A program made the translations under genes and the position numbers. The notes under the pieces were generated by a model. The model saw nothing but the letters and a program-made list of their open reading frames with translations, was not told where the DNA came from and did not search any database. A stretch of DNA of 63,818 nt, filler included, from Guillardia theta CCMP2712 (taxonomy: Eukaryota > Protista > Cryptophyta): NCBI RefSeq assembly GCF_000315625.1. It is 6 parts of 6 records of this genome, joined end to end, with 100 filler letters (N's around TTAATTAATTAA, not from the genome) between each part and the next. Parts side by side here need not be neighbours in the genome. Positions count along the whole stretch, not along the records: positions 41,345 to 56,573 come from NW_005434528.1; 5 more parts are not named here. One strand, written 5' to 3'. This document shows positions 46,323 through 49,278 of the stretch, one piece after another; position 1 is the stretch's first letter; each line of letters starts with the position of its first letter.

Positions 46323-49278
46323 TCACCCTTGTATCTTGTACGGCTCAGACTTGTTGGTCTTCTGGTAGTCTTTTGCATGGTTTGAGTTCCAGGTGACGAC
46401 TGAAGGCAGACAGGTGTAGGACAAGGTAATTCTGATGAAACCATCCACCTTGTACAAGTGTCCCTCTCCTTCCTCCACTTCCTTGGTCATGGCACAAAGA
46501 TGAACCGCTACTAGATTCTCTTCTCCAAAATTCGCACATGCATTTTCCTTGTAGACAAGTGAACTCAGAAGTGTCGATGAATCCACCATTGGGACCCCCA
46601 TCTTGCTACTCTTCCATATAGTTATGTGAAAATTGGATGCCTTCATCTCCAGCGTGACACCTGTTCCAGAGCTCTTCACGGCCTCACGCACGATACATGA
46701 GATGCTTGGTAAGAAGCCATCGTGCAGAACCTTGATCCAGAGAACTGGGTACCTGTTGCTGAACATGGAGAGGCCTTGGAGCTTGAGACAGCACACCGCC
46801 GTGCCCTTCCTATCCTTCATACACTCGACAATATCTTGGGCTCTTGCCTGCAGGGCCTGACGTACTCGTGACACAGCATCGTCGTCGGCACATCTTAATA
46901 CAGCAAGGGTCACGTGCAGCTTGGTAAGTTTGCTCATTCCGTCTTTCATCGTCGGGTGTGCTGCTGTAAACCTCTGCTGGATCTGGGCAACTCGCTCCAA
47001 GACGCATGGATTAACGATCGGCAACGAAACAAAGTGAGTCCATTTCTTGACATGTTGGGGAGCTGCTTCTCCCACTCTCCTGAAAGAATTGGGGTATGAG
47101 AATCAAATCCACTCTTCATGCCAAGACATCAAAACTCACCTTGCTTCATATGAGCTACCGTAGCCTCTACCTCTGACATCCATTCTTTGCAGCATGACCT
47201 TTCCGGCGAAGCCCTCCTTGCCACTTCCTGCTAGTCTCGCAGAGACTCCTGCTCCTGCACCTGCTCCTGCTCCTGCACTGCTTCCAACTCCTCCATCAAC
47301 CTGGCAGCGGACAATGTCCCTCCAGCTCCTTGTCTCCCATACCCTTGCCATGCTGTCCCCTGAGACCGAAGCAAAAGTCTTCTTGTCCGACTCCGTTCTT
47401 GGCACTTGCTCGGCTGTTCTTTGCAGCTCCTTCATTCCACTTCCTATTTGTCCCTCATGCTGGGCTCCTCCTACTTTCCCTTGAGGTTTGGCTTCGATCT
47501 CAGCTCCGCCTGGCCGGCATCGCCGTATGCTCTGCAGCATCCGATGCCTGTCTCCCTCTCTCATGCCTCCAGAGCTGCTCAGCGACACCTCCAGCGTCTC
47601 CGTCAACCTCAAGCGAGCATCGCTGCGAACGCTCTCAGATAGCTTTCTCCTTTCTCCAGGCGGTCTCGGAACCAGCATGCCAAGCTCCGTCAAGCTGCAT
47701 GGTCCGTAAGTCGTGACGTGCATGATGATCTGGTCCATCCATGAAGTGGCGTGATCAGCTGAGGCCTGCTCGACCCCAGCTGATCCTCCACCTTCCAACC
47801 CAGGCGCTGAGGCAGACCTCTGTCCCTGCTTGACCTTTGACTTTCGCTGTTGGACTTGATTGACAGTTGGTTCCTGAACCTTGTCTTCGAGCTGTTTCTT
47901 GCAATGGTTGCATCCGTTCTGCCGGCAACATGCGCCAGTGTTATCAGTGTCATACACATCCTGCACTTTGAAAGACCTGTTCGTAACTCGACCATCCCCT
48001 GGACTTGGCGCACTGAGCACACCCAGGTCAGTTGACTCATTCAGCGTCATCTCTGTCTCTCGCAATCTGCTCAACTTACATTCTGCATCGGTTGTTTTCA
48101 CAACAATATACAACAGCGCAGGGTCAGCACAACATTGAAGAGGAATTCAGAAACTTCTTACACAGCACTGAAAGCATGAAGCCAAGAAATTTGAAATGCA
48201 AGGAGAACGTCAGTTCCAAAAATATCTCAAAGCTATGTTTCATCATGATACTCACCCACTATGCGGCCCCACGCCCGAACCAGCCCATCATGCGACCCCA
48301 AACATGTCAAGGCAACAGAATGTCATTCCATCTTCATTCCTGACTGTATCGCTGAGTAAGAATACTCACCCACTATTCAAGCCAAGCCAGAAAGATTGTA
48401 AGCAAGGAAAGATCAGTACATAGCCTCCGATCGCATGTATGACGATACTCACATACTATCCAGACAGTATCCAAGTTGACAACAAGAACAATCGAAAACC
48501 CAAATGTCACCAACGTTCTCTTACTGGGTGATAGTTCAATTGGATACTCACTGCCTATCCAGCGACCGCAACAGAGAATTGATGAACAAGCGATTGGAAC
48601 AAGACACACAAATCAGTTCATCTCTGAGCTCATCGTTTGTTATGCTACTTACTCCCTATCGGACAGATTTCATCCATTCACGTAAGCATATCAAAAAGCG
48701 TGATTAGTGACAACTGAAACATGTTCCAGTGAAAATACTCACTTCCTATCCAGCCCCGTCTCAGAGATCCATCCCAGTCACAAGAGACAACAAACCGATT
48801 CGCAACAACGACATGTCAGCCTCTACTCGCAATTCCCAATAGGGTACTTACTCCTCTCTATCCAGCCCGATAGCAATCGCATCCAAGTTGAAGATAGCGA
48901 TGAGAACATGATGTTAGTTAGCCATAAATGAGCTGAAGCAAACAAAGGCACCGCCTACCAAACATAGCAGAGGAGATGAAAGGCGCGAAAAGTAAGCGCA
49001 AGACACAAAGTCAGATATTAGCAAGAAGGAATTCGAGAAAGTACGCAATTTCTGCCGGCATTGTTGTGAGGGCTGATCTCGATCTGGAGTGTTGTATGTA
49101 AGACCTTCAAGTTGCAGCATTGGGAGTAGGGTGCGCAGGAGCTGCGCATGGAGGAGGTGAAGGAGGTATGGTAGAAGGATCTCGAGAGCATAGAAGGTCT
49201 CTTCATCAAGCAAACAGGTGAGTCGGTCAATCCCTTCAGTTCCTCCCTTGCCTTGCAATCCATGCAGTTCCAACCCAT
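46323..49278 (-). CDS. Microexon gene A: 8-Cys Zn module, winged-helix-like segment, linker and AKAP7-like 2H phosphoesterase (15 predicted exons, 10 of them 3-6 nt)
   Basis: Phase-consistent model MGWNCMDCK|IEISPHNNAGRNC|A|RG|E|G|A|Y|W|W|CC|N|CAKSRGWSSYEQ|NGCNHCKK..., then exons 47918-47140 and 47079-46323. The last exon has WTHFVSLPI, LHVTL, LQGLSMF, FHITI and FGEE..VHLCAM (two HxT motifs). Confidence 0.8.

Follow-up and report, generated by a model that had tools for sequence, protein, structure and literature searches.

The 5' part of a nuclear gene of the cryptophyte Guillardia theta CCMP2712, GUITHDRAFT_119398, most probably consists of a run of spliced micro-exons, most of them a single codon long, which grew by tandem duplication of a codon together with its intron and which stands before an AKAP7-like 2H phosphoesterase gene body. 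We give this reading as a whole a probability of about 0.6. The gene lies on the minus strand of a 63,818-nt window (the whole stretch of DNA that was analysed, along which all coordinates count), within the 15.2-kb piece examined here, at positions 41,345-56,573. A protein search with the long exon of this gene led to a single cluster, comprising XP_005821376.1/EKX34396.1—the hypothetical protein GUITHDRAFT_119398—together with three MMETSP open reading frames (ORFs) and one JGI ORF. The locus is situated at one end of scaffold JH993110.1 of assembly GCA_000315625.1. The official model of 541 aa, which begins MTLNEST..., reads through introns 12 and 13 and contains none of the micro-exons, and the Trinity/TransDecoder ORFs are likewise wrong.

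The array comprises ten micro-exons (exons of at most 15 nt) between 48954 and 48080, eight of them 3 nt and two 6 nt long (Table 1), and the coordinates given for them in the initial annotation of this sequence all proved exact on re-extraction. Every one is preceded by AG and followed by GT (10/10), and seven of the ten sit in the extended context (C/T)(T/C)GGATAG-NNN-GTRAGTA. As had been proposed, the micro-exons are multiples of three in phase 0 and the joined ORF is free of stops: when all the exons are joined in silico, an ORF of 1674 nt (557 aa) with a C-terminal AKAP7_NLS 2H domain results, of which the micro-exons encode 12 residues (36 coding nt). The motif ATAGNNNGTRAGT (ATAG-NNN-GTRAGT) has nine matches in the window, all on the minus strand and all inside two arrays, against an expectation of 0.03 from dinucleotide shuffles; this is an excess of ~300-fold, and since none of 100 shuffles reached nine matches, the array pattern is real and far beyond chance. 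A scan for spaced runs of AG-NNN-GT(A/G)AG had also been suggested, and a regular-expression search of the 15.2-kb piece for AG followed by N3 or N6 and GTRAG returned 19 matches on the minus strand, of which this array accounts for nine and a second one (45031-44486), which surfaced in this way, for six.

RNA evidence shows that these exons are used. Four runs were aligned to 44100-49390, among them two sets of contigs from different studies (X1 and X6) and one set of raw reads that is very shallow over the array (X19). Depth falls to zero over the intergenic interval 45162-46046 and canonical joints are present—GT..AG for introns 2, 5, 10, 12, 13 and 14, and GC..AG for intron 1—so that the runs are indeed RNA. 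Because the aligner is unable to place 3-nt exons, micro-exons show up as letters between joints or as loose ends; these strings were reverse-complemented, anchored and then compared with both the spliced model and the genomic piece. Every anchored string matches the spliced model. None of the strings of sufficient length to be specific occurs in the genomic piece, where only two between-letter strings of 4-5 nt are present, by chance. The string exon 2-GCG-AGAGGA is present in both X1 and X6, GAA-GGA-GCA-TAT-TGG in X1, and AGAGGA-GAA-GGA-GCA-TAT-TGG-TGG-TGCTG and GAA-GGA-GCA-TAT-TGG-TGG-TGCTGT in X6. A processed, intronless copy as the source of these strings was rejected, because several of them are joined to the locus's own intron sequence (loose end at 48259); one contig links the 3' end of intron 4 to GAA-GGA-GCA-TAT-TG. 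Two JGI transcript contigs reached via cluster member P0155 (L123, 2464 nt, and L124, 2262 nt) extend from 49274 to 46143 and carry the junctions exon 2-GCG-AGAGGA-GAA-GGA, AGAGGA-GAA-GGA-GCA-TAT-TGG and TAT-TGG-TGG-TGCTGT. The exact spliced string, which the initial annotation had proposed to look for in RNA, is thus found from exon 2 to TGCTGT. Since X1, X6, L123 and L124 all carry the predicted junctions over this interval, nine consecutive micro-exons are spliced in vivo, and GCG through TGCTGT are genuine spliceosomal micro-exons, joined in order and all included. AAT, the tenth, is seen in RNA by its downstream junction only. One X6 contig runs on after the TGG at 48372-48370 with an 8-nt string, TGGGGGAG, that is found nowhere in the piece.

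The heterogeneity of the transcripts lies in intron retention and acceptor slippage, not in cassette skipping. Introns 1, 3, 4, 5, 6, 7 and 9-12 are retained in varied combinations, partly spliced polyadenylated RNA is abundant at the locus, and there is no strict 5'-to-3' order of removal (introns 7-8 are out while 4-6 are in, and intron 2 is out while 3 is in). Two alternative acceptors are used. The first is an AG 14 nt upstream of GAA (48759 to 49044), which yields a 17-nt exon and a frame shift; the second, in L124, is the AG formed by GCA and the G of its donor, 4 nt downstream, which destroys the next donor and leaves intron 7 in place. The array had originally been read as a splice-diversified recognition module in which single-codon exons are skipped independently, so that the loop of a zinc-binding module could exist in as many as 2^8 variants. 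Skipping would preserve the frame, all exons being multiples of three in phase 0, and the loop does differ in length and sequence between the two paralogous arrays. However, each observed chain is complete and in order: no joint, loose end or transcript contig is without a micro-exon, and no isoform lacking a single one was found in the four runs or the two long transcript contigs, where contigs could hide rare forms and low-level skipping. The variants that were found are retained introns and acceptor shifts that break the frame or disable a donor, and the strong consensus sites and AG-free intron tails argue for constitutive use. The figure of 2^8 was pure inference, and we consider independent skipping very improbable.

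The introns of the array are related to one another. Introns 3-10 of this gene (gene 1) and introns 3-7 of its paralogue (gene 2) form one family, with pairwise identities of 53-70% vs 46-55% for the control introns 11 and 12. Family members are 80-112 nt long, start with GTRAGTAT and mostly end in GGATAG; in gene 1 the ending is (CTG)GATAG, and CAG in intron 10. A CTRAC branch-like motif lies 40-70 nt before the acceptor in all but intron 7 of each gene, and in the ordinary introns 12-14 a branch-like motif lies 15-25 nt before it. The last 40 nt of 16 introns from the two array regions contain a single AG against 27 expected, a count as low as this occurring in 0 of 5000 shuffles, while the first 40 nt of the same introns contain 29. 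The sole AG in this zone is the alternative acceptor of intron 4 observed in RNA. This AG-exclusion zone, present in both arrays, bears the mark of selection for an accurate choice of acceptor. The idea that the introns host small nucleolar RNAs or are otherwise structured was tried and rejected, as no Rfam match was found in the arrays at E up to 5 and folding z-scores range from -1.8 to +1.8.

The paralogous array bears on both the coding potential and the origin of the micro-exons. Kept between the paralogues are the exon sizes of 27 and 39 nt, the ATG, all Cys codons, GCG and the Cys-Cys exon (with one synonymous change), whereas other positions are only about 53% identical by a count on the alignment, which argues that the N-terminal ORF through Cys-Cys has been under protein-level selection. 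The GC donor of intron 1 is also found in both. Family introns number eight in gene 1 and five in gene 2, and introns of one array resemble each other more closely than they do those of the other. Both observations fit local expansion or contraction after gene duplication. Gene 2, which is nearly silent and has AT instead of GT after exon 2, may be decaying. An annotated gene for 123 aa (P0156, 44198-44569, minus strand) overlaps the last micro-exon of gene 2 and the downstream intron. A search of 5.8 billion proteins gave no homologue for it, and the gene model is probably spurious.

We propose that a ~100-nt unit, consisting of a single codon with a short intron, was duplicated in tandem to give the array, probably by unequal recombination. 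A different origin has to be considered, namely that a mobile element which generates introns inserted repeatedly at one hot spot, each time with a 3-bp target-site duplication. This would account for array introns that are alike in ends and length, for 3-nt spacers as the residue of a 3-bp target duplication, and for adjacent codons one base apart (GGA, GAA, GCA; TGG, TGG, TGC). Nevertheless, the 15-kb piece contains no further copy beyond the two paralogous arrays, no terminal inverted repeats were noticed, introners in G. theta are reported in no paper that a text search returned, and within-array similarity exceeds between-array similarity, as local duplication predicts; we therefore regard serial insertion as quite unlikely. 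Outside the piece, a metagenome scan for CTGGATAGNNNGTRAGTA gave 120 contigs, of which 82 are listed, with a single match each, as expected by chance, and no arrays were present in the 122 loci scanned or in two metagenome contigs with close homologues (L001 and L002), which are too short. The wider NCBI locus (L125) adds mostly N and no array beyond the two. As to how the array is spliced, each short intron might be recognised alone, by intron definition, through its near-consensus donor, its distal branch-like site and the AG-free stretch to its acceptor. A distance of 3 nt is probably too small for two spliceosomes to assemble side by side, in which case neighbouring introns would be removed one after another and the region would be slow and leaky. 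Such sequential removal would explain why polyadenylated RNA is rich in partly spliced forms.

The gene body behind the array belongs to the 2H phosphoesterase superfamily. In a profile search the 557-aa product scored above the curated cut-offs for AKAP7_NLS (Pfam PF10469; 91.1 bits, cut-off 24.4, E = 1.1e-25) and LigT_PEase (26.2 bits, cut-off 23.3), and the two H-x-T/S-x motifs required of the superfamily, LHVTL and FHITI, can both be read from the translation of the last exon. At the other end of the gene, RNA contigs extend to 49281, which indicates that the 5' untranslated region (UTR) is short or poorly covered. Intron 1 is kept in contigs of X1 and X6 and in L123 and L124; as it is in frame and free of stops, its frequent retention would add 56 residues rather than truncate the protein, in the manner of an exitron.

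The initial annotation had the Cys-rich N-terminus fused to the 2H domain. In silico the 8-Cys pattern does run in frame into the domain, and the fusion is plausible; the junction that would complete it, TGCTGT-AAT, is the part that RNA does not bear out, and this is the first of several points that weigh against our reading. The junction, with GGTGCTGTAATTGCGCC at its centre, was never seen directly in any run or transcript contig, and intron 11 (retained form, GGTGCTGTGTAAGAAG) is kept in every assembled transcript. It is retained in X1 record 2 (depth 303 vs about 406 for the gene body) and in its X6 counterpart (2382 vs about 3500), both being assemblies in which depths are rough and rare isoforms dropped, as well as in L123, L124 and the MMETSP transcript behind ORF P0154. 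L123/L124 and X6 may derive from the same raw data. Since introns 1, 3 and 9-12 frequently stay in, few molecules may be spliced throughout; the micro-exon peptide is in no database protein searched; and more distant 2H homologues are without the Cys-rich N-terminus. Finally, tandem duplication and repeated insertion of an intron-like mobile element cannot be told apart short of the whole genome.

Alternatively, the array could be a 5' leader. When intron 11 is retained, an in-frame TGA (48149-48147) ends the ORF from the ATG at 49278 after 37 codons (...WWCCVRSF), and an ATG within the intron (48088-48086) is in frame with the 2H ORF. The main 2H protein would then start at this intron-11 ATG (MQNCAKS..., 526 aa) or further downstream, and the spliced chain would encode at most a 37-aa Cys-rich upstream peptide (MGWNC...WWCCVRSF-stop), acting alone or throttling the main ORF. 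Besides the retention of intron 11 in all assembled transcripts and the deepest contigs, and the absence of such an N-terminus from distant 2H homologues, this is favoured by MMETSP ORF P0154, which starts exactly at the intron-11 ATG, and by conservation between the paralogues, which stops at CC plus GTAAGA. Three points speak against a leader. First, X1 record 1 ends exactly at AAT, where it shares a 30-nt (k-1) overlap with the retained-intron record 2, and at the 48012/48080 joint the side of the matching X6 contig is likewise 27 nt long. Breaks of this kind arise at a branch of the assembly graph, from which we infer that a second upstream continuation, using the AAT acceptor, must exist; by difference it would amount, very roughly, to a quarter to a third of the depth. 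Second, only full splicing completes the motif W-x-C-x2-C-x13-C-x2-C, mirroring the W-x-C-x2-C-x13-C of exons 1-2. Third, a main ORF behind a 37-codon upstream ORF, which has an in-frame ATG of its own inside it, would translate poorly. On balance the leader is possible, if rather less than an even bet.

If, as we prefer, the array is a coding part of a 2H gene, fully spliced RNA would give a 557-aa protein with a Cys-rich N-terminus whose loop is spelled codon by codon by the array, and the abundant intron-11-retaining form would give the 37-aa Cys-rich peptide, after which the 2H protein restarts in frame. The Cys pattern of the spliced product is W-x-C-x2-C-x13-C ... W-x-C-x2-C-x13-C-x2-C. 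It departs from a RanBP2-type zinc finger in that there is no Pfam hit at E up to 1, the spacing of the Cys pairs is 13 and not 10, and the conserved Asn is missing. The N-terminal peptide has no Pfam family and no homologue of 35-110 aa, and a PDB search gave one weak unrelated match (E = 0.19). The zinc-binding module that had been put forward thus finds no support in Pfam, PDB or homologue searches, and zinc binding is conjectural. A more far-reaching and, in our view, doubtful idea is that the array serves as an evolvable loop with a resolution of one codon, in which unequal crossing-over between homologous ~100-nt introns adds or removes one residue at a time (eight units in one paralogue, five in the other), while introns 1 and 11, slow and regulated, switch between three products: the stand-alone 37-aa Cys peptide, the fusion of the Cys module to the 2H domain, and an N-terminally short enzyme. 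If this were true, and if similar arrays existed elsewhere in cryptophytes, it would be an undescribed way to build and tune coding sequence.

Table 1. Exons, introns and micro-exons of GUITHDRAFT_119398 (gene 1) and of the paralogous array (gene 2).
Feature	Position	Strand	Remarks
Gene 1 exon 1	49252-49278	-	27 nt; ATG; encodes MGWNCMDCK; X1 record 7 covers 49056-49281
Gene 1 intron 1	49084-49251	-	GC-AG; 168 nt; in frame, stop-free; joint 49083/49252; spliced in X1
Gene 1 exon 2	49045-49083	-	39 nt; IEISPHNNAGRNC
Gene 1 intron 2	48955-49044	-	90 nt; donor GTACTT; joint 48953/49044; spliced in X1, X6, L123, L124
GCG (Ala)	48952-48954	-	weak donor GTGCCT next; between-letters give AATTGC-G-CGAGAGGA
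Family introns 3-10	48168-48951 (span)	-	eight introns, 80-111 nt
Intron 3	48858-48951	-	often retained
AGAGGA (Arg-Gly)	48852-48857	-	loose end at 48851; RNA contigs
Intron 4	48746-48851	-	106 nt; sole upstream AG at 48761-48760, the alternative acceptor
GAA (Glu)	48743-48745	-	RNA contigs
GGA (Gly)	48653-48655	-	RNA contigs
GCA (Ala)	48552-48554	-	RNA contigs; alternative acceptor in L124
TAT (Tyr)	48453-48455	-	RNA contigs
TGG (Trp)	48370-48372	-	RNA contigs
TGG (Trp)	48256-48258	-	joint 48167/48256; loose end at 48168
TGCTGT (Cys-Cys)	48162-48167	-	paralogue has TGCTGC, synonymous
Intron 11	48083-48161	-	79 nt; donor GTAAGAAG; outside the array intron family
AAT (Asn)	48080-48082	-	donor used (joint 48012/48080); acceptor use suggested by contig break
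36-nt exon	47977-48012	-	CAKSRGWSSYEQ; joints 48012/48080 and 47918/47977
Long exon	47140-47918	-	begins NGCNHCKK, then lineage-specific middle region without Pfam match
Last exon	46323-47079	-	AKAP7_NLS 2H phosphoesterase domain; TGA stop; 3' UTR to about 46143
Gene 2 array	44486-45334	-	nearly silent in RNA runs
Gene 2 exon 1	45334-45308	-	ATG; encodes MPFNCQKCQ; followed by GC-AG intron
Gene 2 exon 2	45154-45116	-	39 nt; donor position reads AT, not GT
Gene 2 micro-exons	45031-44486	-	GCG, GGA, CCG, CTT, CGC, TGCTGC; introns of 101-112 nt between, same family

Several further features of gene 1 became apparent in the alignments. A 47-nt skip (47928-47974, minus strand) with non-canonical ends reaches an X6 depth of 297 vs 3509 for the normal junction; as it shifts the frame and thereby connects the ATG at 48040, within retained intron 12, to the main ORF, it accounts for MMETSP ORF P0151 (MSQLTWVCS...). 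At 47259, inside a (GCAGGA)n coding repeat, nearly all reads have T instead of A, and after 48217, in the T-run of intron 10, the RNA of both studies and contig L123 have one additional base; these two discrepancies are either errors of the reference assembly or the result of cross-mapping of repeats. The hexamer coding repeat itself (47246-47292, a Gly-Ala run) shows numerous loose ends and an extreme k-mer depth of 33,560 to 128,605. Being a low-complexity word common to many other transcripts, it is no feature of GUITHDRAFT_119398.

The surroundings of the two genes are repetitive. Immediately upstream of gene 1 is a 21/43-nt tandem repeat (AAGTACCCCCTACTTGACCTC..., 49399-49622), which may be promoter-proximal; a second copy (42650-42915) is located downstream of gene 2, where the duplicated block has its far end. 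Three paralogous ORFs of the Ifi-6-16 family (interferon-inducible 6-16/ISG12-like, PF06140) are located at 42998-43642 (plus strand), 49697-50302 (plus) and 51468-52292 (minus), two of the three with precomputed PF06140 hits in NCBI locus L125. They lie in a segmental duplication with an inverted copy, the arms of which (43652-44295 and 50811-51454) are 99% complementary. A 28-nt satellite with the consensus CTAAGGCAAGGACTAGCGCTAGTGCTCC occupies 53081-56140 in 109 copies with 96% matches.

How does this locus compare with known systems? 2H phosphoesterases fused to RNA-binding modules include LENG9 (with a CCCH finger), ASCC1 (with a KH domain) and AKAP7. As in these proteins, an AKAP7-like 2H domain with two HxT motifs would stand behind a small N-terminal module in the G. 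theta product joined in silico; unlike in these proteins, the Cys pattern of that module matches no Pfam family, PDB chain or homologue. Recursive (ratchet) sites in long Drosophila and vertebrate introns also place an acceptor and a donor nearly back to back, with stepwise removal and visible intermediates. However, they leave a zero-length exon, whereas the G. theta array leaves 3 or 6 nt in the RNA. Introners, described in Micromonas, Aureococcus and others, are similar short introns with their own splice signals and short flanking duplications, dispersed over many genes; the G. theta copies are known here only as two local tandem arrays within a 15-kb piece.

To our knowledge, 3-nt exons are otherwise known only as isolated curiosities, and full-text literature searches returned no run of single-codon exons, no homologous introns between such exons and no mention of GUITHDRAFT_119398. 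Eight single-codon exons with ~100-nt introns are an extreme test case for splicing, with donors and acceptors 3 nt apart, for the order of intron removal and for intron definition, and would offer a concrete example of micro-exon origin by codon-plus-intron duplication. This makes the locus an attractive natural model for both. It is also a practical warning, in that the reference annotation of a model cryptophyte is wrong here and that standard aligners and gene finders will miss such arrays.

Among ultra-short exons elsewhere are 1-nt exons in APC11 and VPS55, 3-bp exons in RPS24 and MAP4K5, and plant micro-exon clusters (PMC8831610, PMC8632122, PMC12686416). The G. theta exons share with plant and animal exons of 1-3 nt a normal spliceosome, strong GTRAGT donors, absence from annotations and common retention of flanking introns (PMC8831610, PMC8632122, PMC12686416), and differ in that the known plant and animal cases are single exons or groups of two to three neighbours, whereas here eight single-codon exons are separated by homologous introns. 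In Schistosoma micro-exon genes (MEGs), exons of 6-81 bp, mostly 15 bp, are separated by introns of 100-5000 bp and account for the greater part of the coding sequence of secreted proteins, which skipping of these exons varies (PMC10526429). In contrast, the G. theta exons are 3 or 6 nt long with introns of 79-111 nt, no skipped form was seen in the four runs and two transcript contigs, and the array supplies no more than 12 residues (36 nt) of the 557-aa (1674-nt) coding sequence of what appears to be an intracellular enzyme; it is thus not a MEG of the Schistosoma type. Schistosoma MEGs are nonetheless the nearest known kind, in that they too are runs of very short symmetric exons that automatic annotation misses and that are thought to have expanded by duplication (PMC10526429).

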